This document shows, one piece after another, positions 6,375 through 57,253 of a DNA stretch of 64,000 nucleotides. How positions within the stretch are numbered: position 1 is the stretch's first letter; each line of letters begins with the position of its first letter. The notes below the pieces were generated by a model that was not told the origin of the DNA, ran no database searches, and worked only from the letters and a program-made list of their open reading frames with translations. The translations under genes were made by a program, and so were the position numbers. The stretch comes from Dimorphilus gyrociliatus (lineage: Eukaryota; Animalia; Annelida), in contig CAJFCJ010000017.1 in assembly GCA_904063045.1 (NCBI GenBank), forward strand, positions 248,001-312,000, read 5' to 3'.

Positions 6375-9300
6375 TTATTTAACAAGATTAATAATCATAG
6401 ATAAGAATACAATTAATAAGATAGCAGGTTTTGATATGTTTACACCTGATTGACCGTCCAAAAACCAAAAGTTACATTTTTCACCTGTACAGCACTTTTC
6501 ACATTCTGTTTTTCCTTCAACAGTTTGACATTTTTCATTCTCATTTTCCGATGTACAAGTCGCATTAAAGCATCCTCTTTTAAACGTAACCTGGTCGCCT
6601 GTTTTTGTTCTGTAAGCCATACATTCTCCAACTCCGCAATCGACAAATTTAATTTTATCAGTTTCTTCTTTTATATCTTCTATGCTTTTTCCACAATCCT
6701 TCTCACTGCCTTGGCATTGGTAGCATTTACCTGAAAAGAGGAATATCTCAATGAATAGAAGATGGAGGGAGAGGAGGGGGTTTATGAGAAAAATATACTT
6801 ACGAGCACATTCCCTATTGAAATTGTACAGGTAAGTTCCTTTTTTACATTGTGTACATTTTCTACCGTGTACGCAAGAATTGCAGCCAGTAACTGTACAT
6901 GGAACGCAGCCTAATTTATCATCTTGTAAGGTAAATGAAGATTTACAGGAAAGACAAGGAGCTTTTCCTCCTTGCGGAGTTGGACCGCAAGTTCCACAAT
7001 TTATAAATGCAGCATCGTCACAACTTCTACAAGTTCCGTCACTTTGAAGAGAATAGGAAGAAGATACACATTTACTGCATCTGACCAAGTTAGTTGATGA
7101 TACGGAGCAAGTTTCACAATTGGATGGACAAGCCAAGCAACTGCCATCAGAAGTTCTTGCATATTTATCATTACACTTAGTACACTCGTATTTGTGATTA
7201 AATGTACATTCTTTACAATTACTAGGACACTTTCCGCAATCATCGTTATTGAGGTAATATTTATCTTGACAGGAGTCACATTTAAACTCATCCCCGGAAG
7301 GAGAACAAATATTACAGTTTGTAGTTCCGCAAAGTTTACATTCTGTACCGCTAAGACCATAGTTTGAAAGGCAAGCTTTACACTCTACAGTACCTTCATC
7401 GTTTAGAGAGCATTTACTGCAGCCCGCTGGACAAATTGTACATAATTGCTCTTTATTTTTATAATAATGAGGGATACATGAACTACAAGTGAATTTACTA
7501 GTATCTTCTTTAAAAGAGCAAGAGGTACAACCAATCGGACAGTTTTTACATTCTCCATTTGACAAATCTTGAGTTGAGTTACATGTTTGACAAACTGTTT
7601 TACCATTCTGTCTAACTGAAATTACGCAATCTGCTTTAGTTTCGTAACATTTTGAATCGCCGGAAAATAGAAAATATCCAGGTTTACACTTTCCAAAATC
7701 GCATTTATCCTTGCCAGAACTATCGCACGATATACAATTAGAATCGCAAGCTGTAAAGTGAACATGTAAATTTTGATTCAATAAGATATATTAAAGAAAC
7801 TTTACCAAGGCATACGTTAGGCGTTACTCCAGTGTTTAATGTATAACCTTGTAGACATGTTTTTGGTAGTAGAGTATTGGATTGAGCACTTTCATAAATA
7901 CATCTAGCTACGCCTTCACCAGTACATTTAATACAAGTTCCTTGTAGTCTATCTCTAATATATCCTTCTTTACAACCATTTGGTAGACATGTTGTCCCAT
8001 CCAAGCAAAAATCGCAACCAAAAGTACACGGTTGGCATGCTCCGTTGGAATCTTGATAAAATCTACTTTTACATTTTAAACAGAAGAATTTATTATAAAT
8101 ATCCTTAACGCATTTATCGCAATTGGCTATTGTACAAGTTTCGCACATGAAGTCTGAATCTCTTAAGGCTGCTTCGCCACAACCAAACTGAAGGCATACG
8201 GTTTTTGCTATATCGGTTGGATCTATTCTACATTCACTACAAGCCACAGGCGTTGTTGGACATTGAATACAAGCTCCTTGAGTATTGAGAGCGTAGCCAG
8301 TTAAACATTCTGTACACTTATTTATTGTAGTAGGTACACCGCTCGAATCAACGGAACACTTTTTACAGCCTGTTTGACAAGCCAAACAAGATCCAGTTCC
8401 GGCAGAACTGAATGCAAATTCGCTATCGCAAGCTGAACAAGACTCAATGCTACCAGCAGTTGTTGTACTTTCTCTACAAGTTGAACAATTAGGTTGAATA
8501 GCGCCGGGTGTGTCTGTTGAACAACTGAGGCACGAAGAGCCATCGGCACTGAGGACGTAACCAGAGACACATTCGGAACATTTGCATTCATGATTAGTAT
8601 CCAGTTTAAAATTTCCAGCTTTACAGTTTGGAAAACCAGCTGGTACACCGCAAGAAACGCACCCAAGACCGTCACTTCTCTTTATTTGGTTCGCAAGGCA
8701 TTCACAAGTACATCCGGATGTCGAAATTTTTTTGATTCCAACAGAACAATTAAGTGCACCGCAATCAAAACAAGACATACCGTCGTCAGTTGGTTCTCCT
8801 ATGGCACATCCAGAGCAACCGCAAACATATGCCTCATCTAAAAGTCTCCATGAATACGAAATACAATTTGTGATTCCAGTACATTTAGTACAACCCGTCA
8901 AATCGAGATTCATTATGTAATAATTGGGATGTACATCATTAGAACACCTTCCACATTTACACTGTCCAGCTATTGGCACTGCAAAAGCACAATTTTCCAA
9001 ACTGTTTGCTGTACAATTCGTACAAGTATACTTGGAAGTGGAGACAACGTCAATTGCAAAATCATTTTCACATCCACCGCAGCGACCTTCGGTTCCGGTA
9101 TTACCGTCAGATATGGCGAAATAACTATTACAACCGTCGATAGAATTAGCTAGATTCGGAGATGATACCTGAACTGGAGCTGATGTTCCATCGAAAGATT
9201 GCATAAAACCATCTGCTTGAATTCTACAATTGAGAATTGAAGGACTTGTGGCATATGCATATCCTGGTTTACAGCCTGGGTTGAAGGGAGTTAAGGGTAC

Positions 9301-12300
9301 ACAGGTACCTCGACCAGGACTCAATGCATAATTGCTTGAACATTTGGCGCAACTGGAAGCAGGTCCAGGTCCAGTAGGTGAACCGGTTATAGTGATTTGT
9401 TTAACACAGTTGGTAATTATCGGACTGGGAGCGAGTGCGCCACACGAAGATCCCAATTGTAGATCGGCAGATAGGGGCGAAATTAGATTTTCGGTTGATT
9501 GGCACTCTTTACATAAGCAGGTACCTCCTCCTGCAACTGTAGCCCAAGATGTAGTACATCCTCCAACAGGAGATGAGCAAGGTGTTGCGCAATCAAACCC
9601 TACACCGGATGAACATTCTAAACATATAACACCAGACGGTTCTTTAGTGCACTCTGTACATAAAGAATATTCTGCTGTGCAATTTTTACAGATTCCTCCA
9701 TCAAGATAGAAGCCAACTTCACACCTAACGCAGTCAACTCTAAAGTCGTTTGGAGCAGATGGAACGCTTGTTCCCCAATCTAAACAATTTGCCGGAACAG
9801 CTAACGTATAAAGAGATGATATTTAAATGAAAGTTTGTTACTTTTTCAATTGTGGAACACTTACCTTTACATTCGTATCCTGGATTAACAACTGCTTCAT
9901 AACCAAAACGACACGTGTCAAGCCCCGCATTGGAATAAGTTCCGTTACACCATAAAGCATTTGGATAAATGTCTACACAACCTATAAAAAAGACCATAAT
10001 ACAGTATAAACTTTTCAAACTGTAAAGTTTCTTTGTGTGTTACAACATACTTCGACATCTCTGGTGGTCAGATGTTTCTTGAAGAACTGTGTATCTTTGA
10101 GTGCTTGATGCTGACTGATCTCCAAGGCAGCTTCCCGCTTTACACCTACATACGGGAGGAGACCCTCCGTATTCTAAAGTTTGACAATGAGGTCTAGCTT
10201 TTGTACAATCTAAAAAGAATTATTTGATAATATAAACCGAATTTTAAATTGTCTTGTACATACCATAACATCCTTTTACAAACGAAGCTCCAATTTGGAC
10301 ACTTATCCATTGTCGAGCGCCGACACAAGTTTTACAAACAACATCCTCTTTATTCGTTGTTAATTCGCATCTTTGGCAATAGACTCCGCAACTTTTACAC
10401 ACACCAGCATTGATGCCTGCCTGAATAACAAGGGCTCCAGCTGGACAGGATCTACAGTAGCATATATCATTTTCATCAACAATAGAATCAGCATTGCAGC
10501 TACTATCTGATGGACAATTTCCAGAGCAGTCCATACTTGAAAATGAAAATTTCTTGTTATTTCCATTAACTGACTTGGAAGCGCATGGAGACCTTAGGCA
10601 TTTTAAATTATTATCAATAATTTCGCAATGAGCACAACCCTCCAATGAACTACAGGATACACAAGATTCGATTTGATTCTTACTATTATACTTCGAAGCG
10701 TAACCAATGCTACATTTTTGACAAATATTATTACTAGCTGTTTTTCGGCAATATTCACAACCGAATAGACAATCGAAACAACTTCCGGTTTCATCATCAA
10801 ATCCCTTGAATTTAGCACATTTTGAAGCGTAACAAATTGGTGTAGGAGAATCGTTCGTTTTGAAATAGCACTTTAAACAACCATTCGGACATTCTGTAAA
10901 TCGTATTATTATTATATTTTATTATATAAAATTCTAATCATTGTTTACAAACCAACGCAAGTTCCGTCGCTTTTTACCGTCCATGATTTTCCTTCGTTAT
11001 TCTCAGTACAAGAATGAGTTACACTATCTCCATTACATTCTACTCTAGAATTCGATGAACTATATGTGCAGGCGTTACAATTATCTGGACATTTAGAGCA
11101 TAGCTTTTTATCGTTTATGGCGTATCCTGCAGCGCATTTATCATCTTTGCATATAAGACTTCCAGAATCAACTTTACATTCTAAACAATTCTCTGGACAT
11201 GCGTCGCAGCTCTTTGAAGAAATAAGAGTGTATTGTACAGAGCATTTCGTACATTTTATAACGCCGCTAGTTTCTGCGCAAGTGGCACAATTTCTAGGAC
11301 AAGGGAGACATTTGTTCTCCTTAACAAAATAACCATCATTACACTTTTTGCATTGATTTTTACCGCTTGTTGCGTCGCATTCGGCACATTGAGAATCAAT
11401 GATAGTACATAGCTCACACTTGTTGAGGTTTGTAAGTGCGTATTTCGTTGATATACACTCCGAACAGGCATCCTTATTCAAGCATTTTGAGCAGCCAGCG
11501 ATAGATGTTTGACATAATTTACATATTGCCGTTGAACCACTATTGTCTATGTATGCTTGAGATGAACAAGCAGTACAACTAACTCCTCTACTTGCGATAA
11601 ACTCGCATGTTTCACAGTACGATCCGCAAGCTGTTTCATTTAAGGATAATAGACACATATTGTAAGTATTCATTCTTTCATTATTACAACGAATTAATGA
11701 ATAACTTTCGTTACCTGAACATAATTGATCATCGTTCTTTATGTATCCTTTTATGCAAGATGTACAAGTCTGAGTGGCACCGGAAGTAGCTGCTGTACAA
11801 TTCCTGCAACCAGTTGGACAACCTAAGAAAACAAGATTATTCAATAAATATGATTCTAGATAAATTATTCTTAATCTTGGCTCACTTGAACATTTATCTT
11901 CTTCAAGAATATAACCACCTATACAACCTTTACAAATTGTAGCTTCATTCTCATTTTCCCAAGTTTCCTTTTCCTCGCATTTCTCTACGTTGCAGAAACT
12001 TGGACAAGCTGTTAAATAGATTATAATCTATTATAATCTATTCATAACTAGTTACATAATAAACTTTCACTTACTTAAACATTTCAAGCCATCTTTACTC
12101 AAAATCCTACCGCTTGAACAAACTCCACAAGCGGTTAGCTTATCTCCCTCTTGCTCAACTTCACAATTTTGAATATTTCCTGCTCTTGAAGTTACTCCAG
12201 CTTGAACAGCTGCAAATAATAAGTAATTTAATGTATTATGATTTAAGGTAGTATAATATTGTAATAAACTTATGCCTACTGTAAATATCCAATGCAAAGA

Positions 12301-12328: not shown

Positions 12329-13977
12329 TTCTGGACGAATTTTATGTAATTATTCTAAAAAGACAATATATTATTATGAAGGAAGGAGAAGAGCTAATAT
12401 ATGAACATTTAGCTTCGTATCTCGCTTACAATCTATGATCGTAAGAGTATTTATACTCGCTCCATTCAATAGGTGTTGTTTATCAACAGGTATCTATGGC
12501 ATTCGCTATAAAGATTGACTTAATTCATAAAGGCATGCGCCTTCTTTGAATTGATTATTATAAAAATAATAACTATACAAATTGAAAGCTCTAACTTCTA
12601 TAACATTTGTAAAAATAACAGTCATAATTGTAACATTTTCCTTATTCTATTAATTCCTTCATGGCGGAAATCATTAATTGATATTCGTATTCTTATCTTC
12701 CCATTACAAAATTACTATTAAAAAGAATAGCGAACTTATACATATTAACAACCGGAAGTTATATTTAAAGAAGAATTATTTTTAACTATACATATTTATC
12801 AAATATTAGGATATATCTCGATTTTATTACTTTCAAAAGAGAGATTATTTCTGGGGAATTAAAGAAAATAGCTGACAAGAATGTCGAAAGAGAGAGAAAT
12901 ATGTTTTGAATTGAACAGAAAACAAGGACATCTCTTCGATTAAAGATTGTATTGATTATCAAAGTTTTCTTTATAGAGCAATTTAGAGTTTGCGTTAATT
13001 TCTTTAATTTTTCCACTTATTACTTAATCAATTCGGCTATTAATTAAACTAGACATAGACCTATGCTAAATGTTGTTTACTTCCTATATATATCGTAATA
13101 TGAACATATTGACTTATGAGTTTGATTACTCCGGAAATGAGTGATTATCTGTGGTTGAATAGCGATTAATTTTCACTAGTGTTATTCTCTTTCTTTATTA
13201 TAGATAGCAAATGCTATAGGTAGAAGAGAAAGCAAATTGGTCTTATTCCAACCGGAAGCATTAGGCTATTCACCCTTTTTCATTATCTATTTTACCTTTC
13301 ACTTGCCAATGAAGTTGTAAGCAAGATTCCAATCTAGAGGCTAGGTTTTTATCTTGGCAACGAGGTGTTTTTCAGAGAGATTTCCAATAAAAGAAATATT
13401 ACGAAACGCGTTTAATTGTTTACTTTTCGTTGAAAAACATCTTTTAACCTTTGAAAAAGCTGTACATTAATTATTAATAAGTTATTCGTACTGTCAAGGG
13501 CAATAAAAAGAGAGGAAGAGTGTAACGTAATTAATCTCTCAACCTAATTGTCTAGAGCAAATGCCTTAGGGAATATCGAAATCTGGTATATTATACTTCA
13601 ACTTTTTGGTCTGCTAAACGCAGAAGCATTAATGAATTTTTTATTGCTGTAATAAATTATTACAAAATCTCTAAGTTGTTTTATTGTTGTTCCTATATAC
13701 AGTGTATGAACAAGCTTTTTGTGGTTAGATTAAAATTGGTTACTTTTGAAATTTACACACTGTCTGTTGTATAATCTGTATGAAAGATATGAATAAGGAT
13801 AGAATCTGATATCCTAATTAAATTTCTAAAGGTATCAATCTTATAATCATCTTGTACTCATTCCTAATCCATCTGGAAACTTTGAAAAAAAGAAGAGAAG
13901 GGTTTATAATACAAGTCATAATAAACAAGTATACTGTATTAACATCAACAATAGAAATTACAATATAAACTATTTCT

Positions 13978-16900
13978 TTATGAAAATCGTTTCTTTAAGA
14001 TACGCTCAACAAGTAGAGCAAACGAGTGCATATCTTCTGCGCGCTTTTCATCATCAAGCATTGAAAAGTTTTCCCAGAAAACGAGATATTTCTTAGTCTT
14101 CTTCTAGAATGTATAAATGAAAATAATGAATACAATACCTAAGCTTTTTACATTCAAGATTCAAACCTGACAAACAACATTACGTTCGCTTAATTGACCA
14201 TTGAATGATAAAGAATTATCGTGAATATAACAGCAGGCAACTGCAATTCGTTTGATACAATAATAATAGTTATAGTTGCGAAAGAATTCATTAGATAGCA
14301 AAAGACTTTGATGAATGGTGGGAAGCGTCGAATGGCAGATGAAATTCTTGTTAAAAAGATGTAAATAGGAGGTAACTTTTTAAATAAAGGTGTAAACAAG
14401 TTATGTAATAATAATAATTGAATATCCCATTAAAGGTAATAAATCGTTATAGACTACTTACAAAACCTATAAAATTCCTTTTCAATCTCGTAAATGATTA
14501 ATTGTCTATAACGGAATTAGAAACGTGAACAAAGGTAATTTGAATAATTAATTAGAATACTTTCTATTCATTATCCTTTCTCGAGCTTTTTTTTGGGAGC
14601 TTCTTAATTCGGACAAAGTGTAGATAAGTGGATTAAGGATGGAGTTGAAAGGAATAAGGATAATGGTAATTATCGCATAAGTATCGTTGTTTATATTCAA
14701 TTTATTTAATGCAGATAAAACTCCTAAAAGGAATAATATTAATGATTAAATAGCAATGATAGTGAAGGATGAAACTAAAAGACCTAAAAGAGAAATTGGA
14801 AGCCAACATAGTAAATTTGTTAAAACAATCATTAAGATGGTTCTTATCAGTTTATTTTGAGTTTTTACATGAAGTTTTGATTCTTTCCACTTTTTCATTG
14901 ATCGTTTTACCTTCATTAATAAATCTATATAAATCGAGGCGTTAACTAGACTAAGACAAAGTGTAAATATTCCAAAGATTATAAATGAAAAGATCCATCC
15001 TTCCCTTTTCTCTCCTCCAATTTCAATATTAAAACAAATAGGTGAATTTGAATAAAATTTCTAAAATAGAAATAGGTTATTCAATGTTTGTTTTTTTTTG
15101 TCTAGTCAGCTAAATTTTCAAAAAAAAAAACCTTATAGAATATAACAGGAGCCAAACCAATAAGAAGAGAAATAGATATAATTAAAAGTAGTAGAATTTT
15201 GGAATATTTAGTTAGCATTGAAATATTTTTAGGATTTAAAATAGCTCTATGTCTATCAAGAGTTAATAAAAGTAAACTGGTAGCCGACAATACTAAAGAG
15301 CTAGTCATTATTATTCCACTAAATTGACAAAGTATACTTTCTTTCCAATTCTCCTCATTTTCCAGATAGCTTTTATAATAATGAATATCAACGCATGCAA
15401 TTATAAAGATATAGGTTGATGTAAAAAAGTCACCAATCGATAGGGATAGTCGATAAGGTTTTGATGGTTTCTTTGACTTTGATATTAGAAATATTGATAA
15501 TAAATTCAATAAAACTCCAGTGGTTCCAAGTATCCAAAATAGAATTCTTAAGATGTTATTACTCAATAAATTTGAACAAGTATTGAATAGAGATGAATCC
15601 GGTTTACAAATTATACGATTACCAATATATTTCCAACTTAGACAGCATAGTTTATATCTATTGCTGAAGATTTTAACTAAGTTTTTCAAGTATCTAACAA
15701 TGCGAACAGCCTGTTTAGCCGGGAATTCTGTATTGTTCAAGTACAATTCTTGTAGATTAATTAACTCTTTAAATGAAGTTCTTTCTATTGTACGAAGATG
15801 GCAATTTTGTATTTTAAGAACCCGTAGAAGTTTCAAATTATCAAATGTTATAGGATAGATATGAGATATAGCTGTTTCAGTTAAATCCATATAGATAAGA
15901 TTAATTGCAAGAGTTAGTAGAGAGAGTTTGGAGAAATCCAAAGGATTATAGGACAAATCAAGATACTGTAAAACTCTAAGAGGTCCTACTTTTAAAAAGT
16001 CTATAGTCTTTAAATTGTTTCTAGCTAGAATAAGAGTATACAAGTTTGGTACGATAATTGATGAGTCGTTTAGATATTGGTTGTTTGTTACGTTTAGATA
16101 AACTAGAGAATACGAACGAAAGAACTCTTGAAATTGAAGATTTCCTTCTAGGGTAGCTTTCTTAAAATTCTTATTGATTGAAGAGATTAGATTTCTTCCT
16201 TTATTTGGACTTTTGCAGATAATCTCTAAGAGAAATGGTTGATAACAGAATTTGATATTGGAAACGGGAATTTCGCAATTTAATTCATCACTTCCCAAGA
16301 AACAATCAATGATACCATTGCATAATTTATCAGAAATTAAAAATAGGCTTTCTTTTCTACACTTAAAAAATCCTTTCGCTATGAAATTCTCTATAAAAAA
16401 TGAAGAGAGAGAGAGAATAGAATGAAAGGTGTATAAAGTGATGAAATACCGCAATTATCTTCATCATCTTGATAGATACAATGATAATATCCATCGCAGA
16501 CAAACTTTATATCTATACAAAATTGTTGCTCTTTACACAAGTATTCTCCTTTATTACAAATAATGTTTTCATTGTCTTCATTAGAATTTATCATAGGAAT
16601 CTCAGTTCGAAGATTGTTCATTGAATCGTATGATACGCTCCTTTTTCTGTTAGATGTTTGTTGAGGGACGTTTAATTCGTCTAATAAATCTCTACAATTA
16701 TATATTCCGTCGCCTATAAACTCTCTTGGTAAACATTCTCCGTCGCATTCGAATTGATAATGGTGATTACAGCCTATAGTTAACTTTCATTGAGTTAAGA
16801 AGAACAAATAATTGTCATCACACCTTGACTAATGGCAGTTACTTCGCATATTTCGTCGCTAGAGTCGAAGCAGTTTTTCTCTTCATTACAAACCTTATTG

Positions 16901-19900
16901 TAAGGGATAGATTGACCATTTTTACAAGTATAGTTAAGATTTTTGGATAGTTTCTCATCGAATGTTTTCCATACTGAACGGATAAAACATTAGAAGAAAA
17001 GATGGGCGAGAAGATAAGTTGGGTTAATTGAAGTTTTAATACAATTTCTCTTTATAATTTACCGCAGTAGAGTTCGTCCGATTGATCATCGCAATCAATT
17101 TGAAGGTCACATACTAAAAGATAGCTTATTGTTTGATTATAGCTTTGACATTGATACTGCTCTAAGAGAGAATTTTTACATTCTTCGTCCTCGCCAGACG
17201 GACAATCAAAAATTCCGTCGCATAAATAAACATAATTAATACATATTTGATCTTTTGAACATAGAAAACTATTATTCTTACAATAGAATTGTTCAAGCTC
17301 CGTTATGGATAATCCGAAGTAATTGGATCGTTTCTCTCCTATTAAAGAAATATGTATGAATTAATAAATGTCGATATTAAATTCTAGACAAACTATACCT
17401 AAAATTTTATGACAAATCAATACGTTATTAATGATATTCTTGCATTTTGATGATAAAGAGAAATATCTTCCTTTACTACTGCCAATTATTTCCATACAAT
17501 CATCTCTAACATTTATATTGAAAGTAAAACTTTCAGGTGATTTCCTTTGATAAAGATGAAAACTATTCCAAAAATAGGAAGCTGGATAATTACCGATGGT
17601 CGTAAGAATTGACCTATTTTTATAATCAACTTTTCTCTTAATTGCTAAGGAAGAAGAGAAATATATTCTTTAAATATATACTATTATTAAATTTAATAAC
17701 CAACGACTGATAACTGCCAACTCTTTAGTTCCATTTCTAAATTGATTGAAGAAGATACGAAGAAGATAAATGATAGAGTGTTTATAAATAGTTGGAAGAT
17801 CTGTTAAAGTCCAATTTCTTTGAGAGCATAATCTAACACGGTTATTAATTGGCTCTTTTCTTTTCAATAGAAAAACATAGTAGCAAACATGACCGAATGT
17901 TAAAGCGTCCCATTCACTACATATGACTGTAGAGTACGTTATCTGTTAGTATCGTTATGAATATATAGTAAAACGTTATTACTTCCTCTATTCCGACATT
18001 GTAATAAAAAATTTTCGTTAGACTCTCTATTAATTAATTAATTAATTAATTAATTATTACTTAAGCTAAATCTGGTTACTCATTAATTTGGCAATTATGT
18101 AAATTTGTTTCATTTTGTTTGCATATCATTATAAACTGTTTAGATTCCGATACGTTAGTGTGTATAATTGTTCCTTCGTTAAAGCCAAAGTGGGAACAGA
18201 TTAATCTTACTTCGTTGTATCTTAGAGGTAACATACTCTGCCAATGAAGATTTTCGAATATTTGATACATTCCGATAAAACTATCGAAAGTGTGCTTATC
18301 ATCGACGAGTTCCATTGTTTCACTTTTAAATCTCAATGAAAAATCTGTTCATTTTTTATTAGAAATATCTATTTATAGAGTAATAATAACTAATCAATGA
18401 ATTACCTTTTACACCGGAACAATCAAAATACGGAAGTCTTAACGATTTTAGAAAATATGTGTTGTATATCTCTTCATAGCGCAGCTGACATTCGCTAACC
18501 TCCTTAGTTTCACTCTCAAAATAACAAGAAGACAATATCACAATCTTTAATAAAAGGTCAAATTGTACATATATTATATTTAAGTAAACCTATATTTGAC
18601 CTCTTTATAATCGTGTTTATTGACTGTAAAATATTTTTTCATCATACTTTTTGAAGGTGAAGAATTGAAAAATCTACAAAAAGTCCACGGATATTCATCA
18701 TATTCAAGGTCATAAAACTCTTGACTTAAATAATAAGCTGGTAATACTCCAAAAGTTTTCGAAACAAAGAAGATTTTAGTAATATTTATCAAACGATTAT
18801 ATAATTTTGAATAGATAAAAGTATTATTTTCATTTACGCCGCTTAATTCAACATTTAAATCTTTAATAATTAATTAAAATATATCTTTAATAAATACTAA
18901 TGAATATTCATTTACCATTTGTATCTAAATAAGCACAGAGCACTTCGTTAGAAGTGAACGATCTACTGATAGATATTAACATTTTAGCATCATTTAACGT
19001 AACTTTAAATGGATATTTATATGCTGCAATCTCATAATCGAACTGTTTAATAAATTGAACTTTTGAGCAGATCTTCAAATCGTAGTTCTTGTTCTTTATA
19101 GTAATAACATATACATCTTTTCCACTAATTCTTAACAATAGTACCAGAAACATAAAACTCATTTTAGCGAAGATATCTATAAAGTATATTTTGCTATTAG
19201 ATTATTATTATAATGTTATTTAACTAATTATTCAAAATTTCTCACACGGTCTCGTCCTTTTATAACATTTCAGACAAAATCCTACATCTGTTGTTTTATT
19301 GATGGTTAAACTGCTAAAGGAAAGAAACAACGGACGTTAGACTTTCTATTTTGTTTTATAATTGCCGAAATTCTTACAAATGATAGGCTATTGGAGAAAG
19401 TTGGATGGATACGTATGAAGTTACGTGTTCGGAAAGTTTACATGGATTTTGGATAGAATGAATATTATCATATCCCATATCATAACATAAATTATTCCTC
19501 GAAGAGCTATTTATTAGTAAAGAATAAGAAGAAAAATTCACAATATACGAAATATTGGTCGAAGTATTGAAATAGTTTAATAAACCATAAATGTAATTTT
19601 CGCCATCCTTATAAATATTCATAAAAGGTTTACTCCTATATTCTGTTAAGAAATCTCCATATATTTGCATATTATCAACTGCAAAAGATAATAGTTAAAT
19701 ATTTTACTAACCATAGTTACTGTCGCATTTATAATTTGGAATATAGATAAAATTGTCAGATATTCTCGAAAGTTCTCTTGGACTGTAATAGTTTAATGAA
19801 CAGCCAAGTAATTTTCCCTCTAGATGGACAGTTAGGCAATCTTGTAATGATATAACCTAAAAAATAGTTAAAAGATAGGCAAACTCTAATAGAAAAAATC

Positions 19901-21028
19901 CTTGAATACTGACTTGTTTAGTAGATGAATTACTAAGACGATAGGAGCTACTTCTTGGTTGAACGTTATCGGATATATTATAAATTGACAAGCATATAAA
20001 CTCTGACGGGAAAAAGTCCTTATCGTTATTACCACTGAAATATGGCGGAATTAATCCATAAGTTTTCGATATAAAGTATAATTCCGTTATATTTTCTAAA
20101 TAACCATACAACTTAGAGAATATATAGTTATTAGCCGGATTAGAGCCTAATCTTTCAATTGTTAAATCTAAAAATAGAAACATAAGAGATGAATAAATTT
20201 TACCTTTTAGTAAATAATATATTACCATTCAAATTGAAATAGCTACAGGTTAATTGTTTAGTTTTATTAAGTAGAACACTACTGATAATCATCTTATCTT
20301 GAGAATAATTTACAGAATAATTTCCGTTCGTATGATTTATTTTAAATGTTCTCCTCTTGACAAACTCTACCTTTTGACAAACTTCACTAAGACTTATATT
20401 CGAGTCTACTATCTGTTTTATTATTCCAGATGATTTTAGATATAGACGATATAGAATTTCATCTAGTTCTATAGCAAATATATCTGTAGGGAAAGATGTA
20501 TCTCTATAAGAATTTCTCTATTAGATGAATAGTTATCTTCTCCTTACAATCGGCATTCAATTTATAACATTTTAGACAAAATCCATCGCTATTGATAGAG
20601 GAAGATGCTACTCTAAAAAGTGTAGATATTGATATATTCGTGTGTTTCTTTAATTTTTGAATTTAAGGAAACTACTACAATTGAAAAGTATCTTCTTTCA
20701 ATTCAACCATGCTGTTTCCTCTCCTCGAATCAGTTATAAGACATGGATTAGAGATTGAATGTATGGTATCAAAGCCAGCTTTTCCGCACAGTTTATTATT
20801 ATTTAACGAATCAAAATCATAACTTTTAAAGCGAACAGGAAACGTTTCATTAGATAATGTAATTGAAATTAGGCCATATACGCTAGTAGTCGTTTCTTTG
20901 TATATTTGTATAAACATTTGTACATCATCAGAAAGTATACGACTCTTATTAGCTTTATTTAAAACTATTAAAGTTTGTACTAAGAATAGATAAGTAATAG
21001 AAAATAGTTGAAAGGTTGTATTCATCAT
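13978..21028 (-). CDS. GRL101-like receptor A: 2 N-terminal modules, SRCR-like, CTLD-like, 6 LDLa, LRR, class A 7TM, pseudokinase-like tail
   Basis: Signal-like MMNTTFQLFSITYLFL. LDLa repeats with DCxxxxDE. LRRs (LQYLDLSYN). TM1 LGTTGVLLN, TM3 LTLDRH, TM6 LCWLP, TM7 NPLIY. Tail ends ...IHDNSLSFNGQLSERNVVCQ/KKTKKYLVFWENFS...EDMHSFALLVERILKKRFS* at 13978. Confidence 0.88.
18029..18056. repeat. (TTAA)n self-complementary microsatellite, intronic in receptor A
   Basis: Perfect run attaattaattaattaattaattaatta. Confidence 0.9.
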
Positions 21029-21256
21029 TAAAGATTAACAAATTGTGAAAAAAGTACGAAAAAGAGTTAAACGACTCTTCTTCGTATGATAAATATTGAT
21101 ATAAAATCATAAAAAAACACTTTGTATACGGTTACTCAAATTAATTAATGTTGTAAAATGAAAAGAATCATGTTTATTAGTATTTAGAAGAGAAGAATTT
21201 TTATATGATCCACTTTTTAATGTCTCATTATAATAAATATATTGAAAAATGGGAAT

Positions 21257-24200
21257 TTATGATTTAGAATGTAGATATAACATTGTTTTCTTTCTTAATA
21301 CCGTTTTGACAAAATATCCAATAGCGTATACATCCTCTTTCTCTTTCTTTTTGTCCAAAATTGAGAAATTTGGCCATGAAACGTAATATTTCCCCTTCAA
21401 TTGTCATATTATTCAACATGGAAAGAGAATAATAGATAATAAACTAACCGCATACATTATATTCTCCTCATTCAATTGACCTTTGAATGATAATGAATAT
21501 TGATGAATGAACTGGCAAGCATTCAACACTTGTCTTATACAAATTAAATATTCCGAATTCATAAAGAAAGGTTTCGTTATCTCTAAAGAGAATTCATTTT
21601 TAAGATCATTCTCCCAAAGGGAAACGTTATTTGCATTGAAATCTCTTAAATATGCAAAGACTATAGAAAGAGAAACAAAAATGAGTAAGTTATAAAGGAA
21701 ACTAGTAATAATCACAATTTCTATATAATTTCATTTTTGTATTCTCTGCTAAAACCTTTTCTCTGTTTAGTGTTGAGACTTTTTTCATTTCTGAAATGTC
21801 TAATCCAGTTAGAATGGAGAGAATTAAAGGATTTACAAATGAATAGAAAGGACCCATAAATACGAATATTAATTTATTGTTTATGTAGTATGAAAGTTGC
21901 ATTATTGATGATAAAAGACCTAATAGGAAGACCAAAAACCAACAAAAGAATCCAACTAGTAATGCTAGCTTGAACAGATTGCTAAATTGACGCAAGCTGT
22001 CTATTTTTAGATTAGATGTCTCTTTTTTTCTCATTCTCTTCGATATAATCAAAGATAGGAAAAGAGTTGTTACACTAAAAGCCAGATTAAAGGTGGAGAA
22101 GATAAAAAACGATTGATTTTCTCTCTCAGTCTCTTCTTTTACAAATATTGAATTTTGACAAATTGAAGAACCTGAATCGAATTTCTATCAAACAACAGTA
22201 TATGTATACATGTAAATTCAATCTTTGAAACAACCTGTAAAAAGAGGGAAAAGAAGAATCCAAGAAGAAAGGAACAACCAAAGGTCAAGAGGGAAAATGG
22301 AATTATGTCAGATGTGAATTTTGATTGAATATTCGGATTTGAACAGGTGTTATAATATCGTTCAAGCGTAAATAATAAATAACTAGAATTTGATAGGAAG
22401 AGTGAAAATATCATTAAAAATCGTATCAATAAACATAGATAGCCTTCCATTAATTGTGCCTCATTTTCTAAGTAGGCCTCTTTAAAATATCCATCAATAA
22501 ATGCAATAATAAATGAGCAAGAGGAAGTTAATAGATGTCCAATAGAAATAGACATTTTATAGTAACTGTTTGATTTATTACCAACTTGAAAAAGTAGAAA
22601 CAAAGATAAAGAATTCGTTAATAATCCAATTAATCCTAAAGCCCAGAATATTAGCTTAAATACAATTGTATTCAATAGATTTGAACAGTTATCATTCATA
22701 TATAAAAGTTGAGGAGTACAGGTAAAACGATCGCCAAAATAGTTGAATATAAAACAACATAGTTTCAATTTACTGCCAAAAAGTTTATCAAGTTTTTTCA
22801 ACTGTAAAATTTTATGAAATATCCGAATTGTAGAGAATTTTGTATTATTTAAATGCAGTTCATTTAAATTCTTTAGCCATTTTGATAAAATATTATGAAT
22901 ATTTCTTATATAACAATTGTTTAATTTAAGAATTTTTAAATATTTCAACTTTACAAAGGTATTTCTATTAATCCGTGATATCTTTGAAGAAGATAAATCA
23001 ATATAAATTAGATTGGGAGAGTTTATTATCAATGAAAGATTAAAGGATATTAAAGAATTAAAAGAAATATCTATATATTGTAAAAGAGGTAATGAATGTT
23101 TTCTTAAAATATCCAGATTAGTTAGATTATCTCTCTTTAAATTTAAATAAACAAGATTAGGAGCATAGATTGATGATTTTGATGTTAAATCGTTGCTCTC
23201 AATACGTAATACAATCAACGAATACATTGTTTTTATAGAAACAATCTCTATTCTTCCAATTAGAGTAATTTTTGAAAAGCTTTCATTCATATAGAACGTA
23301 AAATTATCATTTTCGTTCAACGTTATATCATTAGCTTTCCTAATACAATAAATATCAAAAGGATACGATTCGTAACAATGTACTCTACGAATTTTTGGAA
23401 TATTACAAAATATTTCGTCACTTCCTTCCCTACAATCTATTTTTCCATCACATATTTTACTGTTGGTAAGAAACAATCTCTCATTTCTACATTTAAAATA
23501 ACCTTTCGGTAGAAATGTATCTGAAAATTTCATGCGAAAAAGAGGATTAATTTAAATAGGAAAAAGTTATGATAAACCGCAATTCTGTTCATCATCCTGA
23601 TGTAAACAATGATTAACACCGTCGCAAACAAATTGAATAGAGATACAATACTCTTCGGATTGGCATAGATACTTTCCAATACCGCAATTTATCTTTTTAT
23701 CTCCAACCTTTCTCTTTATATAAGGAATAGGAGTTTTCAGATTTTCTATAGTATCATACATCATAAGATCCTTCTTCTTAGAAGGGTAACTGTGCCATAA
23801 TTTTAAATTTCTCTTGTATTCAAATGCGTTGACTTCTCTATCCGATTTATCCTTACAACTATACTTTCCATCGCACAAGAAAGCTAATGGTAAACAATGA
23901 CCATCGCAACTAAATTGTCTATTCTCATTGCATCCTTTACAATAGTTTATTGTTTGTTTAAGTAATTTAATAAGAAATAAGAATAACCTATTTTTACCCG
24001 ATTGATATCCTTCGTAAATACTGATATTAGAATTGCATAGTTCATCACTTTCATCAAAGCAGTTTCTCTCATTATTACAAATATCTTCAAACTTGATACA
24101 TTGATGATTATTACATTGAAATCTTTAGGAGAGATGATAATCTTAATTAGATTTAATTAAATTCATGCCTTCTACCTGGAACTTTCAATGCAGGTTTGAT

Positions 24201-36157: not shown

Positions 36158-39100
36158 TTAAATGCGTTTGTTAGCCTTTGAGAAAAGAACTTTCTTTTGA
36201 TAAATCATTTTTAAAAATTGTCCCAAATATAAGATATCATTCTTCCCTTTATCTTCATTATACCTTGTAAAATTATTCCATAGAATGACGTAATCGTTAA
36301 TTGATTGCTGTAGTTATTGATAAATTATACAATTTTGTTTTAGTATAGATATAGGACATACAATAGATAGATAAGAATAGTAACCTGAAGAAAAATACTA
36401 TTTATAGTTAATTCTTTATTAATACAAAAGTGATTTTGATGGCAGAAACTATAGATATTTGCTATAGATTTGATACATTTTAAATCTTGATGAGTTTGAA
36501 AGAATTTCAAATTAATTTCAATAGTTTTCAATTGAATAGCATCTTCCAAGACTAATAGATTATTCCTCTGACATTTTCTTATTGATAGAAGTACTGTATA
36601 CAAAAGAAGAAGGTACTATTATCGCGTATACATTATGAATTTACAATAATAGACCTTCCATAATTGACTTTTCTTCAATACTTTGAATTAATTTACCTCT
36701 ATTAATTAAATAGATAATTAGTTAGTTAGAATATTTAATAAAAGTAATAAATAGATAGTTAATGATAACAATTTCTCTTTTCTTTTTTTCTTTGATTCTT
36801 GAACAAGATTAATCATTTCACTTGATGAATAGATCATCGGATTTAAAAGAGAGTTAACTTGTACTAATAAGACAAGACCGCTATATATATCGTCCTTGAA
36901 ATATACTTGATTTAATATGGCTAAAATTCCTGTATACAGTATATAAATGTACAATATATACTGTATAAATATAAACATAAACGCTATTGGATACTAACCA
37001 ATTACCGATAAAGGAAACCAACATAAAATGCTAGTGGCTATAATTAGAAATATACTATTTGTGATCTTATTCGTTTTCTTTTGATGACGACTGGTTTTGA
37101 ATCTCTTGAACGATAGTCGTATACTCAAAAACATATCAATATAGTAAATTCCAATGATTATAGTAATAATAAACATTAATAATCCAAAGATAAGAAAGTT
37201 AAAGAGCCATCCTTTAGTTTTTTCGCTTCTAATATGAATGTTAAAACAAACTGGAGTTCTTTCGTAAGGATTCTAGTATATTAACTATTGTAATCTATGT
37301 ATAAACTATTTATTCATCGACTAACCACATAGAGAATTAAAGGAGTACAACTAATTAGTAAGCATATTATTATTGATAATAAATTAATCCAAGGACTATA
37401 CGACGCCACCTTCGAAGGTAGAAAAGGATTTTTAATACCAGCGTGTCTTTCTAAGGTAATCAACAAAAGGGAAAACGCCGAAAGTGTTAAAGCGAACGTC
37501 ATAACCGTTCCAATTAATTGACACATAATGCTTTCCCGCCAAACGGTATCGTGTTCAAGATAATTCTCTCCAAAATATGAATCGGTAATTGCTATTATAA
37601 AAACGTATATTGACGTAAGACAATCGGCAATTGAAAGTGTTAATCTATAAACTCTTGAACTTTTCTTAGACAATAATACAATTAAGATAGAAAGTAAATT
37701 TCCAATAAATCCAACAATTCCAAAAAGCCAATAAATAATCCTTAAAAAGATTGAACTAAGAAGAGTTGAACAAGTAAAAAGTAACGATTTAGACGGTCTA
37801 CATATTAAATTTTTGCCAAAATATTTCCAACCAAAACAGCAAAGTTTAAAACTTTCACTAAATATTTTTCTAATATTAAACAACTGTTTAACATTGATAC
37901 TATCGGACATTTTATAATAATTCGATTTATTTAAATGAAGTTCAATTAATTTATTAAATATATTAAAAGATCCTTTTTCAATATATTTAATACTACAATA
38001 AGCTAATTTTAATATTTGTAAGTGTTTTAATGGTTTAAAATCATTTAATTGAATAATTGAAATTTCAGTATTAGATATATCCAATTGAATTAAATTTGAA
38101 CTGTTCAAAAATCTCAAATCAGTAATGGTAGGAATAGGATTGAACGATACGTTTAAATATTGAAGAATTACTAGACTATTATCACCAAATATAGTCATAG
38201 TTTTCAAATTACTATTGACTATTGTTAGATGTATAAGATTTGGAAATTTATGAAATAGTATAGTATCTATATGATAATAGTATTGAATATGTAGGAAGAG
38301 TAAATTATAAATATTCTCTATTGGTACAAAATTGAATATTCTATGGAATGATATCATCTTTATATTCAATATATTTGTAAGATTATCAATAGTTTCCAAA
38401 CTATTATCATCTATCAATTCACAATGAACATGTATAGAATTCAATAGTTTACAATGATTATTTCTAATATTTTCAATTTGACAAACGAATTCGTCACTTC
38501 CGGAAAGGCAACTAATCTCATTATCGCAAAGTTTACTAAGTGGAAGATAAAGATTCTGATTTCTACATTTAAAGAAACCGGATGGTATAAAGTTTTCTAT
38601 AAATAACTTTAATAAATTATTAGATCATCATTTTAATATTTCTAACTAAATACCACAATCAAGTTCATCATCTCCATGGAAACAATGTGTAATTCCATCG
38701 CAAACATTCTCTATAGGCATGCAAAAGTAATCTAGTTTGCACAAGTATTCACCAATATTACATTCTTTTCTTTTACAATTATGTAGACTGTTATAAGGAG
38801 AATGAACTTTCGTAAGCAAATCTCCCATTGTATTGTATTTTAATTGGCAATTCTCATCTCGTATTGCCTCATCAAGCTTTGTTGAATGTGGCCGACAAAT
38901 ATCATCATGATAACAGTAACGAACTTCTATCTCTTGATTTATGCAATGAGCCTTCAAATCACATTGAAGATGTTTACTCAAACAGAGTCCGTCGCACAAA
39001 AATTGTTTATCCTCTCTGCATTCTTCGATATCGTTTCTTAATGTCTATCGAAAGAGTACTTTTTTACAACTAACTTTCATAAAAGCCTGGATGTATCGCT

Positions 39101-47200: not shown

Positions 47201-50181
47201 GAATAGTTGCGATAATAAAAGATGTTTATCTAAAAAGAATATCTTTAATCATGAAAAGAACTGCGAAGATAATAGCGACGAAAGAAATTGGGATAAAAGT
47301 ACTTGTTATCTTTAATAGAACGAACAAATTGACCTATTTGAAATTATACAGAATTCTGTCAGGGTTTTCCATGCAGTAACCTTTGTTTAAGAGAAGAGCG
47401 AAAATGCGACTTTAAACAAGATTGTCCAAATAATGAGGATGAAGAATATTTTATGTGTTTTAAATATAAATTAAAAGGTTTTTTAGACTTGAATTCATTG
47501 TTGCAAGTATAACTTATCATTATCATTTATCATCAAGAATGTAAATACATTATTAACAATCCGGAAGGAAAGAGGAACGTTTTGTCCCAATTAAATCCAA
47601 AGATATATTTTAATCGTCCTATACAACAGTGTTCTAATGAAGAATACGCATGCATTGCAGGTGACAATTGCATAGCGTTACCTAAAATTTGCAACGGAAT
47701 TTAGGATTGTAGAAACGGAGATGACGAAGAGAATTGCAGTAGTTTGTCATAATTAACTATGGAATGAATAATGGATTTATATACAGTAGATACGTTTCTA
47801 TTAGATAATTTTATCCTACCAAAACATTTCAAATGTAAGGCAAAACAACAATTCATTTCTATTAAACATGTATGCAATCATGTAATGGATTGCGATGACG
47901 GTAGCGATGAAGCTAGTTGTGACAATGGCAATGTTATTGAAGGTTGTAAAAACGTAAAGGAAACTCATACTATTTCCTGTTCAGTAAGAGGCAAATATTT
48001 AAAAGAACTATCATTTCAAAATTCAACAAGTCCTCTATATAAAAAGATGTTGTTTGAATATACTAAAATAACGAATATTCATTCAAAAGTATTGAACAAT
48101 ATTCTATCAGTTACTATAATAAATTGTCAACTTGAAAACATTTCAATAGCGCAAACATTCCCAAATTTAATTTCTTTAGAGATTAACAAAACAGATTTAT
48201 ACATTTATTCCAGTATTGAAATCTGGAATTTGAAATTACTTCAAATACTTAAATTTCAATCAATAACTAATAAATATTTTGCTAATTTTTCATTTTCTCA
48301 ATTTCCACAATTGATTCATTTACATATTGTTAATAGTAGAATAACTCATTTAACAAATACAACATTCAATAAACTATTGAGATTGAAATATTTATATTTC
48401 ATTCAAAATACTGTTATAAATATTCATAAAGATACATTTTTAATACCGAATTTTGAAATATTGAACTTTGAACAAACAACTTTACCAATTCAACAAACAT
48501 CTATAGCTTTAGAATCGTTGAAAACCATCTCAATGTTCTTAAGTAAATATTACTTTTTGTGTTGTTTTATTTGGAAATTTGTGGGAAAATCGACAAAATG
48601 CTATCCGAGAGAATCTCTTTTCTTTTCTTGCGATGATCTATTAACGTCTAAAACTCTTCGAATTGTTATTTGGATATTAGCTTTAATGGGAATTTTAGGG
48701 AATTTACTATCAATTTCTATTAGAATAAATAATTTTAAAAGATTATCTTGTATATTTCACTGTTCATTAGCGTTTGCCGATTTGGGCACTTCAATATATT
48801 TATTAATTATAGCATTACAAGATTTGAAATATAGGGGATACTTTATTGAATATAGCTTCGAATGGAGAACAAGTGGCTTATGTAAATTTGCTGGAGTATT
48901 ATCTAGCTTTTCCCTATTTATGTCTTCTTTCAGCTTAACGATTATAACAGTTGAACGATATATTATTGTTGTTCATGTGTTGAAAAATTTCTTTAATATG
49001 TATATCATCACTTTGATGTTTATCGTTATGGTGTTTTTATCAATCTCATTCGCCGTTTTACCATTATTGCTATACGATGTAAGAACATTCTTTTATCTAT
49101 GGAGGATGTTTTTAAAAGGGTTCTCTTTCAATTTGTCTCTCTAGAATTATTATTCTCAGTCTTCTATATGTTTTAACTTGTTCGTACGAACTGAAAATTA
49201 CGATGGATGGTTTTTTTCCTTGTTGTTGTACGGAATATGGATACCGTTGACATCCTTAGTAATTACTATTTGTTATATTCTATTATTGAATAATCTAAGG
49301 ATAGCCATGTTTAATAAACACGGTAAAAATAGCTTAAAGATGTTCAACAAAGTGATAAAGAATGCCTTAGTCATTACCTTAATTAATCTATCTTGCTGGA
49401 TACCAATATCAATACTGGGTTTTATAGCTATATCTACAAATTTATATTCTTATTGCTATGCTAATTCTGCCTATAAATGCTATTACAAATCCTATTATTT
49501 ATACAATATCAGAGATATTAAACATTAGTAGAGAATGGAAAAGAAAAGATGAATCCTTTAAGTAGAAAAACTATTCTTTATATTCTTTCTAGAAGGGTTT
49601 TTTAATTAAGAAATTAATTCTTTTCTTAGACAAAAGTTAGCAAAAGAAATTAAAGATAAATCGAAAGTAGAAAGTACGTTTTTAGTTCTTTCATCTTTCC
49701 TTTATAATTCCTTTACTTAATAGACTTAATGTTTATGAAAAAATCGTATAAACATCATATAATACAAAGGGAAGTTGTAGAATATAGAAATGATACTAGA
49801 ATTTCTACACTTCTCTACAACTTCTCTTACTTATTGCAACTGTGTAGAAGCTCGTTTACAGTTTTAAAATTCTGTGAAGAAAATTCATACACAATAAATG
49901 AACCGTTTAGCGAGAAAACATTCTTAATTCAGGTAATAAATTTAGTACTTAATATATACTGTATGTTAATTAATTAATTAATTAATTAATTAACTAGTTA
50001 ATTACTATTTTTTTAGAATAAGAAATTTTTTATACCTTTCGATAGTATTACGTTTTTCGAGGAAGATAATTCAAAGAAATGTATTTTCTCCCTTGGCCAA
50101 TTCATAAGGAAAAGTCTACAAAGAGAAGTTCTAAATCGTAAATTTAGATTATGGAATGACCAAAAACCTTATGATTTATAG
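44272..50181 (+). CDS. GRL101-like receptor D: 1 N-terminal module, SRCR-like, CTLD-like, 6 LDLa (two degenerate), LRR, 7TM, pseudokinase-like tail
   Basis: TM1 LALMGILGN, TM2 LAFADL, TM3 ITVERY, TM6 SCWIP, TM7 NPIIY. Tail ...LKFCEENSYTINEPFSEKTFLIQ/NKKFFIPFDS...KKCIFSLGQFIRK...PYDL*. The exact start is less certain. Confidence 0.87.
49966..49993. repeat. (TTAA)n microsatellite, intronic in receptor D
   Basis: ttaattaattaattaattaattaattaa. Confidence 0.9.
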
Positions 50182-55927: not shown

Positions 55928-57253
55928 CTAATCTCCATCTAATCGATTAAATAAATAAACCATTTTATCGATATCCAAACTCTTCTCCATATCCCAATTA
56001 TCATTTATGACATCAGTCGGAAATTTACATTTATCATCTAATCTAATACAAAAAAAGATTTTAGCTAAAGAATATAACAATCCGTATTTTTCTCTATTCT
56101 CTTCCCACCATTTAATAGGATCTTCCGATCTATCTAATAACGGTTCATTTAGATAGGCTAGTAAAACTTTCTGAACTTTTCTCTTGATAATATCGTTTGG
56201 TGTATCAATACTCTCCAATGCGTATATTCGATGTTTAATTGTATTATAGGCTATATCTTTTTCCTGTTCATTTAAATATTTCAATTTATATCTAGGATCC
56301 AAAACTGACGCTTCGTTTAGAATATTTTTCGTAAATCTCGAATTGAAATAGTAACAATGTACATTTGTTACTAAATTACTTATAATAAATTCTCCTAATG
56401 GACCATTATACGAATTAATAAACAAAACAAGATCGGTAACTGTAGGAACAACATCCGAAAGAAAACATCTTACACGAACCAGTTTAATTGATAATTCAAA
56501 TTTTTCCAATATATGATTAACGAATTTCTGCTCTTCGTTACTCAATCCTCTGAATGTCTTTTGAAAATCTTTCGAATCGATAATTGCCTTACCACTCTTC
56601 AGTAGTAGATCGTCTGGTGAGGCAATCTTCGGTAGGTCTTTATCCGGTAAATTCTCAAAGTATTCGTACAATTGTTTATGCGAGCATATAATAAAGATTG
56701 TTTTCGAAAATAGACCATATCTATTGTTCAAAACACATATAAACTCACTAGGATGTTTACCGATATACAACGTTACACGTTTAATTTCTAAATCTTTATC
56801 GGTAACAAACATAGTCAATTTTTTCCTAGTAGTTGCTTCTTCCTCCTCCATAAGTATAAACGAATAGAATGATGCATTAAGAAGATTTCTCCATTCAATT
56901 ATCCAATTCCTAACAGTCTCTTCCTTTTTCATTATTACTTGAGAGAATTCTTGAAAATTGATTGTTGGTGATATCATTTTAAGGATTTTAATGAAGAAAG
57001 GATTAAATAGATCTTCAGTTTGTGAGTTATTTTTACTTAACGAAAAATCCAATACATTTTCTAATAGAATATTCCTAACAACTATTTGTTGTTCACTAAC
57101 CTCTTTTTGGTCTTTTAGACCATGAAACATTTTTAAATGACGTAGCATTGATAGAACATTATTCTTAAGGGTGAAGACTGCAGCGCAGAAAGCACATTTA
57201 GCTTTATTATTCTCTTCTCTATGAAAGTATTTCCATACTTCTTCCGCTTTCAT
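55928..57253 (-). CDS. BED zinc finger + hAT dimerisation domain protein (ZBED-like, hAT transposase-derived)
   Basis: VWKYF...CAFC...LRHLKMFH BED finger. LDPRYK and DPIKWWEENREKYGLLYSLAKIFFCI match the hAT C-terminus. Intact single-exon 441-aa ORF with no recognisable DDE motifs or TIRs. Confidence 0.85.
   Translation of the reverse strand: MKAEEVWKYFHREENNKAKCAFCAAVFTLKNNVLSMLRHLKMFHGLKDQKEVSEQQIVVRNILLENVLDFSLSKNNSQTEDLFNPFFIKILKMISPTINFQEFSQVIMKKEETVRNWIIEWRNLLNASFYSFILMEEEEATTRKKLTMFVTDKDLEIKRVTLYIGKHPSEFICVLNNRYGLFSKTIFIICSHKQLYEYFENLPDKDLPKIASPDDLLLKSGKAIIDSKDFQKTFRGLSNEEQKFVNHILEKFELSIKLVRVRCFLSDVVPTVTDLVLFINSYNGPLGEFIISNLVTNVHCYYFNSRFTKNILNEASVLDPRYKLKYLNEQEKDIAYNTIKHRIYALESIDTPNDIIKRKVQKVLLAYLNEPLLDRSEDPIKWWEENREKYGLLYSLAKIFFCIRLDDKCKFPTDVINDNWDMEKSLDIDKMVYLFNRLDGD

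Follow-up and report, generated by a model that had tools for sequence, protein, structure and literature searches.

A conserved cytoplasmic tail, probably a remnant of a protein kinase core, on GRL101-like receptors of the annelid Dimorphilus gyrociliatus

The window analysed here is a 64,000-nucleotide (nt) stretch of the Dimorphilus gyrociliatus genome (assembly GCA_904063045.1, contig CAJFCJ010000017.1, positions 248,001 to 312,000; coordinates below count from its first letter). It holds four G-protein-coupled receptor (GPCR) genes, receptors A to D, for which "GRL101-like" or "type C LGR" (leucine-rich repeat-containing GPCR) is a fair description of the architecture. In the interpretation that we favor and consider probable, these receptors are spliced to a cytoplasmic tail of 126-139 residues that is a conserved module of the family and the remnant of a protein kinase catalytic core. 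A splice donor just upstream of an apparent stop, which follows transmembrane helix 7 (TM7) and helix 8, would lead into two or three small exons. These would encode in turn an alphaD/alphaE-like helix with F-C/I-H at its end, a stretch resembling the catalytic loop (N-S-L-S-F/L-N-G-x-L/F-S) in which N-G takes the place of the kinase R-D, a short beta hairpin split by a phase-0 intron, and an alphaF or subdomain IX-like segment (E-D-x-x-x-x-G-x-F-V-K-x-I-L). The presence of conserved in-frame exons past the TM7 stop is confirmed. Descent of the tail from a kinase core appears to be the best reading of the results taken together, and a rather likely one, because two divergent exons agree in their kinase group and in the structural element that they match, a second motif, in another exon, corresponds to a second kinase element in the proper order, and the controls fall short.

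Splicing of receptor A past an apparent stop codon

The RNA evidence comes from one small run, whose contigs were aligned over 13400-19300. The run is taken to be RNA-derived because its contigs skip nine short stretches, all of them GT..AG-ended on the minus strand. A single contig of 534 nt, at a depth of 9.6, spans the three tail junctions of receptor A. It consists of the pieces 14003-14103, 14167-14375, 14462-14505 and 14561 to about 14730, followed past 14730 by 10 loose letters whose sequence is that of the TM6 exon end in reverse complement (101 + 209 + 44 + 170 + 10 = 534), and its joints skip 14104-14166, 14376-14461 and 14506-14560, which read CT..AC on the plus strand and hence GT..AG on the minus strand. 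From this composition it follows that the end of TM6, the TM7 exon and three downstream exons lay on one RNA molecule, which for receptor A bears out the earlier claim that the seven-transmembrane (7TM) region and the tail share one mRNA. The contig reaches down to 14003, leaving 23 nt to the stop codon at 13980-13978. It is the sole contig across the junctions of the A tail, and it is spliced; none with a retained intron was found.

Read straight through, the TM7 exon of receptor A gives ...NPLIYTLSELRSSQKKARERIMNRKYSN followed by the apparent stop at 14550-14548. The donor, AA/GTATTC (the slash marks the junction), lies 11 nt upstream of this stop and, since the intron at 14506-14560 is skipped in the RNA, the stop after TM7 is intronic. 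The spliced model has a 126-residue open tail that ends at the TAA at 13980-13978 and contains the tail peptides listed in the original prediction, which had been made from the letters of this DNA and a list of its open reading frames (ORFs). The family alignment and the profile matches to kinases place the alphaE-like helix of the main tail exon at about 14221-14277 and its catalytic-loop-like stretch (HDNSLSFNGQLSERNVV) at about 14173-14220. The last exon holds the beta-strand-like KYLVFWENF and, at about 13990-14037, the alphaF or subdomain IX-like segment EDMHSFALLVERIL (hhalign P 0.01). With an apparent stop that is intronic and sits just after TM7, exon-by-exon views of ORFs and homology-guided gene models are likely to truncate these receptors.

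The same exon layout in receptors B, C and D

Receptors B, C and D have the layout of A, with GT..AG in the sequence at every junction (Table 1). In all four receptors a phase-1 intron precedes the main tail exon of 209-212 nt and a phase-0 intron precedes the last exon. A, C and D have a mini exon of 44 nt behind a phase-2 intron, as does L001, a copy from outside the window that is described below. Receptor B has no first intron, and its TM7 exon continues through the residues equivalent to the A mini exon (21661-21760 in B as compared with 14462-14560 in A, both on the minus strand). In receptor D an apparent TAG stop lies after the donor of the TM7 exon and would be intronic, as in A. The splice junctions are seen in RNA for A only, those of B and C coming from conservation alone. 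Of the words sampled from 49400-50181 in D, a share of 0.47 occurs in the RNA run, where exons alone could give at most about 0.6; this share is compatible with transcription of the exons, the D joints themselves being unseen.

The original prediction had claimed an in-frame tail in all four paralogs, and the spliced models are indeed open over 126-139 residues, A by RNA and the others by sequence. Its end coordinates (13978, 21257, 36158 and 50181) prove to be those of stop codons, and the recurring phase-1 and phase-0 introns that it described are seen in A, B, C and D. Given 8% stops per random codon, a rate that reflects the AT-rich DNA here, the chance of an open frame of 126-139 codons is about 1e-5 per copy.

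Table 1. Receptor genes of the window and the exons that form or adjoin their tails
Feature	Position	Strand	Basis
Receptor A gene	about 13.9-21.0 kb	minus	
Receptor A large exon: one LDLa module, leucine-rich repeats, TM1-TM4	15102..16454	minus	Pfam LRR_8, 7tm_1, Ldl_recept_a
Receptor A TM7 / helix 8 exon (NPLIY), ends in phase 2 at 14561	14561..14723	minus	RNA joint 14505/14561, translation
Receptor A 55-nt intron (GTATTC..TATAG) with the apparent stop TAA 14550-14548	14506..14560	minus	skipped in RNA contig
Receptor A mini exon, 44 nt (QLIIYEIEKEFYRF); equally long exon in C, D and L001	14462..14505	minus	RNA contig
Receptor A main tail exon of 209 nt, phase 1 at entry and phase 0 at exit	14167..14375	minus	RNA contig piece
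Receptor A last exon, stop 13980-13978	13978..14103	minus	RNA contig piece 14003-14103, alignment
Receptor B gene	21.2-23.6 kb and beyond	minus	
Receptor B TM7 exon, ends in phase 1 at 21716, donor GTGATT	21716..21900	minus	inferred from conservation
Receptor B main tail exon, most kinase-like copy (EYLICIRQVLNACQFIHQYSLSFKGQLNEENIMY)	21449..21660	minus	CaMK1D match, ESM Atlas neighbours
Receptor B last exon (KYYVSWPNFSIL...EDVYAIGYFVKTVL), stop 21259-21257	21257..21394	minus	alignment
Receptor C gene	36.1-40.7 kb	minus	
Receptor C mini exon, 44 nt; end of the TM7 exon at 36770 (donor GTTATC)	36655..36698	minus	inferred
Receptor C main tail exon	36385..36593	minus	sequence, alignment
Receptor C last exon, stop 36160-36158	36158..36307	minus	sequence, alignment
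Receptor D gene	about 47.7-50.2 kb	plus	
Receptor D mini exon, 44 nt; end of the TM7 exon at 49561 (donor GTAGAA)	49630..49673	plus	sequence
Receptor D main tail exon, most decayed copy (FCEEN for FCHEN; no NG)	49724..49932	plus	alignment
Receptor D last exon, stop 50179-50181	50017..50181	plus	sequence, alignment

Copies of the tail outside the window

A profile of the four main exons was searched against 1.84 billion representative proteins and gave six matches at E (expectation value) <= 0.001, all of them short ORF fragments from Logan assemblies of a few runs; the libraries searched held no annotated protein with this tail. For five outside matches contig DNA or gene calls were at hand, and four of these (P0001, P0002, P0003 and P0006) share contigs with LDLa, leucine-rich repeat (LRR) or 7tm_1 ORFs, or with large upstream ORFs. 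Ldl_recept_a ORFs occur in the outside loci L001 and L005. At another locus, a single uninterrupted, intronless ORF of P0002 spans the TM6-TM7 region and continues through the tail as far as the main exon reaches, and B, as described above, also lacks an intron that its paralogs have; the family has gained or lost introns. In L001 the last tail intron (L001:6133-6201) is 69 nt long, in frame and stop-free, and a prokaryote-style gene caller read through it to give the protein P0001. Within the libraries searched, the tail module thus appears to belong to this receptor type; it occurs in ten copies or more and did not turn up elsewhere. The TM7 region of L005 (L005:4449-4715) has PLINSIGELRNFF in the position of NPxxY, which means that one or more members of the family have lost this motif and kept the tail.

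Tails A and B are 41% identical, as against 40% for the receptor body, and in the other five of the six pairs the tails are 16-26% identical as against 25-43% for the body. The paralogs are 13-41% identical, and synonymous sites are therefore saturated. The best-kept block, Y-L-x-C-I-K-x-I-x-x-A-I-x-F-C-H-x-N-S-L-S-F-N-G-x-F-S, lies on the alphaE and catalytic-loop part, and the last exon conserves K-x-F/Y-x-I/V... and then E/K-D-I/L-x-S/A-L/I-G-x-F-V-K-x-I-L-x-K. Conservation of the tail, judged from these alignments, is low but real.

Resemblance of the tail to a protein kinase core

The solved structures searched for relatives of the tail numbered 177,635 sequences, and matches were taken at E up to 10. 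All seven matches of a profile of ten main exons are kinases (CaMKII at E 0.32, BTK at 1.2, BRSK2 at 2.3), and all are aligned at the end of the alphaE helix; a profile of four main-exon sequences found kinases in 9 of its 12 matches. When the main exon of receptor B was searched alone with phmmer, the top match was CaMK1D (E 0.64, 44 residues), in an alignment (EITKPFFMNSEYLICIRQVLNACQFIHQYSLSFKGQLNEENIMY) that runs from the end of alphaD through alphaE to the catalytic loop and includes IRQVLnA against IRQVLDA as well as L..EN..Y. The main exon of L001 is 28% identical to that of B, and each of its six solved-structure matches is CaMKII, in the same register as B. By sequence, the nearest kinase relatives of the tail would be those of the CAMK group.

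Ten spliced tails were aligned and compared by hhalign with 120 canonical bacterial Ser/Thr kinases and with 32 YopO-family kinases. Against the canonical set, the last exon fell on subdomain IX (k-Di-slG-fvk-iL against SDiYalGL-LYEaL; score 23.1, P 0.01), and a greedier alignment with this set had both alphaE and subdomain IX in register. With the YopO set, alphaE, the catalytic loop, DLG and subdomain IX were all matched in order along a single co-linear alignment (score 16.9, P 0.11). Neither score was reached by any of 150 column shuffles (means 11.4 and 10.4), and the reversed alignments scored 10.4 and 12.5. In the ESM Atlas feature search, which by the tool's own warning is a lead only, the neighbours of three paralogs were mostly Pkinase-fragment clusters with scores of 0.85-0.94; of 100 neighbours of B, 84 were in Pkinase-family clusters. 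YopO as a single sequence did not match the tail profile. E. coli YegI was dropped as a kinase comparator, having no Pfam Pkinase match, and a MAFFT alignment on one read-through template was rejected because it misplaced the main-exon and last-exon rows.

How much of a kinase does the tail keep? The matches place an alphaE and catalytic-loop part before an alphaF part (D-x-W/Y-x-x-G), an order that is consistent between matches that are themselves weak (solved-structure E 0.3-2.5), and the statistical backing is limited to the alphaD-alphaE-catalytic-loop and alphaF parts. The glycine-rich loop, the VAIK lysine, the HRD aspartate and DFG are absent in the alignments of the ten copies: in the tail, N-G replaces R-D, and the D-F-G position has N-F-S or is empty. 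Its activation segment is about ten residues long, and only 10-30 residues follow the alphaF-like helix. There is no complete bilobal kinase fold, with no room for beta1-beta3 or an ATP site and nothing of alphaG-alphaI. Lacking these motifs and a real activation segment, the tail can neither bind ATP in the usual manner nor phosphorylate a substrate. The original prediction had described a truncated pseudokinase, and its description stands as far as the resemblance to a kinase core in alignments, the missing HRD aspartate and DFG, and the short activation stretch are concerned; the term "pseudokinase" itself overstates a tail that has no N-lobe strands and ends after alphaF.

Weighing kinase descent against the alternatives

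Several results count against descent from a kinase. No single kinase match is formally significant, the best being E 0.3-0.6 among solved structures and P 0.01 in hhalign, and the search of 1.84 billion proteins returned no kinase at E <= 0.001. The Pfam search that had been proposed as a check on the kinase assignment also came back empty-handed: hmmscan to E 10, on exon pieces (17 pieces of one alignment) and the L001 read-through, found no kinase family and only noise (Chromo, RecJ_OB). Among solved structures nothing was matched by the last-exon profile alone or by the main exon of receptor A alone, and a hidden Markov model of the tail scored at most 4 bits on bacterial kinases (hmmsearch). 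The ESM Atlas tool itself states that ten neighbours of one family are also returned for a third of shuffled proteins. An AlphaFold model of P0002:112-216 shows two helices only, and that of L001:5926-6351, read through the intron, is of low confidence (predicted local distance difference test score, pLDDT, 59; predicted template modelling score, pTM, 0.33); when the latter was compared with the PDB by Foldseek, the matches were to phage coat proteins and inteins, none reached E <= 0.001 and none was a kinase. The stretch of about 45 residues between helix 8 and the alphaE-like helix is matched to alphaC-beta4-beta5 by eye only, and the function of the tail is something that we infer.

In the L001 model, the 23 residues encoded by the intron form a long confident hairpin, which is its most confident element. 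High AlphaFold confidence, it seems, can fall on a non-coding read-through, and the model and its Foldseek matches were discarded as meaningless.

Could the tail then be a real, conserved cytoplasmic domain, specific to this lineage and of non-kinase descent, that has come by short convergent motifs such as an amphipathic helix ending in C-H and a D-x4-G before a helix? We consider this unlikely, while granting it some weight: the kinase matches are weak throughout (E 0.3-2.5, P 0.01-0.11), Pfam and the 1.84 billion proteins yielded none at their thresholds, the structure models are uninformative, and A (alone), C and D show little or nothing that is kinase-like. Convergence sits less easily with two exons of 28% identity that pick the same kinase group at the same structural element, or with a ten-exon profile whose matches are kinases without exception. 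A further motif, in a different exon, fits another kinase element with correct order and plausible spacing, the shuffled and reversed controls fall short, and the language-model search agrees for three paralogs. If the tail does come from a kinase, the original prediction had linked it to the kinase-homology domain of receptor guanylyl cyclases. The kinase-homology domains of natriuretic-peptide receptors read ...LH......HG.LKS.N.., with a longer spacing and without the HRD aspartate, and the H-x7-G-x-L-x3-N spacing of A and B, one residue longer than that of CaMK1D, would agree with such an origin. This extra residue amounts to a single gap in the CaMK1D alignment, and the motif is not kept in C, D and several outside copies. 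No guanylyl cyclase is among the solved-structure matches at E up to 10, which are of the CAMK group (CaMK1D, CaMKII, BRSK2) and BTK, and no cyclase exon lies downstream, the stop coming soon after alphaF in all copies. We regard such an origin as improbable.

A different kind of alternative grants that the tail exons are transcribed and spliced, and holds that the tail is a functionless, decaying relic of an old fusion, or that most of the product is a short-tailed receptor ending at the stop after TM7, with the spliced form as a minor isoform. The faster divergence of the tails than of the receptor body in five of six pairs, the loss of the conserved H and N-G in D, and RNA evidence that consists of a single contig from one small run would all suit it. 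Frames are nevertheless open in the four copies and in every outside copy examined, despite 8% stops per random codon, and the intron phases and the 44-nt mini exon are kept. The A and B tails are as conserved as the receptor body, and the only contig over the tail junctions is spliced, with no intron retention. We give this alternative little credence, and descent of a retained tail from a kinase core is the explanation that we carry forward.

A possible role for the kinase-derived tail

As a kinase remnant, the tail would serve as a non-catalytic docking or regulatory module at the inner face of the receptor. A structural role is suggested because the tail is retained in many paralogs, and docking or regulation would be the likeliest form of it. 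The alphaD-alphaE-alphaF surface of kinases is a docking place for regulatory segments and partners, and CAMK-type kinases bind regulatory segments there. It is conceivable, although on balance doubtful, that these receptors are a bilaterian class A LGR-type family that has kept a folded, kinase-derived module for non-catalytic signalling. Such a module might be a docking platform or a decoy for a CAMK-type regulator, with an output separate from G proteins and arrestins, and it could be viewed as an independent animal reinvention of the GPCR-kinase fusion. If this is true, the wiring of a 7TM receptor to a kinase arose again inside animals, and a kinase fragment well below the completeness of a pseudokinase can be retained across many paralogs.

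Receptor architecture and neighbouring genes

The window is AT-rich (G+C about 28%), with short introns. Pfam searches of the large exons found LRR_8 above the cut-off in A (1e-10), B (9e-9) and C (4e-7) and below it in D (1e-4), and Ldl_recept_a above the cut-off in D (9e-7) and below it in B (8e-5) and A (1e-3). The 7tm_1 domain is above the cut-off in A (5e-10), D (1e-9) and C (3e-9), and the Pfam scan gave no 7tm_1 match in the large ORF of B. Receptor A has DRH in TM3 and NPLIY in TM7, and upstream of its LRR exon, at 16394-17360 on the minus strand, about six LDLa-like cysteine modules can be read by eye in open frames. This combination of LDLa, LRR and 7tm_1 domains agrees with the earlier assignment to class A receptors of the LGR/RXFP type. 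A search for named relatives, with the 450-residue exon of A against 5.8 billion proteins, returned a single LRR protein; full-length relatives lie outside the length range searched. Farther upstream in receptor A (18080-21034, minus strand) there are large exons without a Pfam assignment that look duplicated; 19377-19694, for example, resembles 20678-21034.

Between receptors B and C lies an intronless NLR-like gene, a single open frame of 1523 residues (31273-35844, plus strand) whose residues 159-308 form a NACHT domain (Pfam 4e-9). Directly downstream of receptor A, large cysteine-rich frames of 468, 572, 133 and 299 residues with CxxC-type repeats (6375-11844, minus strand) probably belong to one big secreted or membrane cysteine-repeat protein; their only Pfam match is a weak one to Giardia VSP. 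An ORF of 207 residues (4219-4842, plus strand) encodes a SUEL-type lectin domain (4e-13) followed by a ShK domain, and one of 441 residues (55928-57253, minus strand) has zf-BED and hAT dimerisation domains, as in a hAT-family transposase that is possibly intact.

Comparison with known systems

Literature searches turned up no LGR-type GPCR and no bilaterian GPCR described as having a kinase-like tail, in keeping with the earlier statement that no characterised animal class A GPCR of this design was known, and the Dimorphilus genome paper describes a conserved GPCR repertoire with no mention of such a tail. In an eLife 2025 survey (PMC12716839), GPCR-kinase fusions are reported only from choanoflagellates, sponges, oomycetes and amoebozoans, and not in other metazoans. 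None of the GPCR-TKL/K and GPCR-TK fusions is functionally characterised in the accounts that the same survey and a second paper (PMC5784254) give of them. Like the receptors described here, those fusions place a 7TM region and a kinase-type domain, at the cytoplasmic C-terminus, in one polypeptide. They differ in having complete, recognisable kinase domains on other 7TM families, whereas here the receptor is class A, LGR-type and bilaterian, and what it carries is a truncated, dead fragment below the reach of Pfam.

The kinase-homology domain of receptor guanylyl cyclases offers a parallel in layout, in that a membrane receptor has a catalytically dead, kinase-like module just inside the membrane. 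There, however, the module is a full-length pseudokinase on a single-pass receptor and is followed by a cyclase, and no sequence match to it was found here. The CAMK-group kinases (CaMK1D, CaMKII, BRSK2) are the best matches to the alphaD-alphaE-catalytic-loop part of the tail, as in IRQVLnAcqFiH..s....-L.eEN..Y, at an E of only 0.3-1. Unlike them, the tail is without N-lobe strands, HRD, DFG, an activation segment, alphaG-alphaI and a calmodulin-binding segment.

The receptor part is reminiscent of the type C LGRs (RXFP1, RXFP2 and Lymnaea GRL101), in which LDLa modules and then LRRs are set on a rhodopsin-type 7TM region with NPxxY, and in particular of the GRL101 type, which has many LDLa modules, as receptor A has its six or so read by eye. 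To our knowledge, which draws also on the literature searches, known type C LGR members end in an ordinary short tail after helix 8. Unlike them, the Dimorphilus receptors, which are very divergent in sequence, carry after helix 8 a conserved kinase-like module of 125-140 residues.

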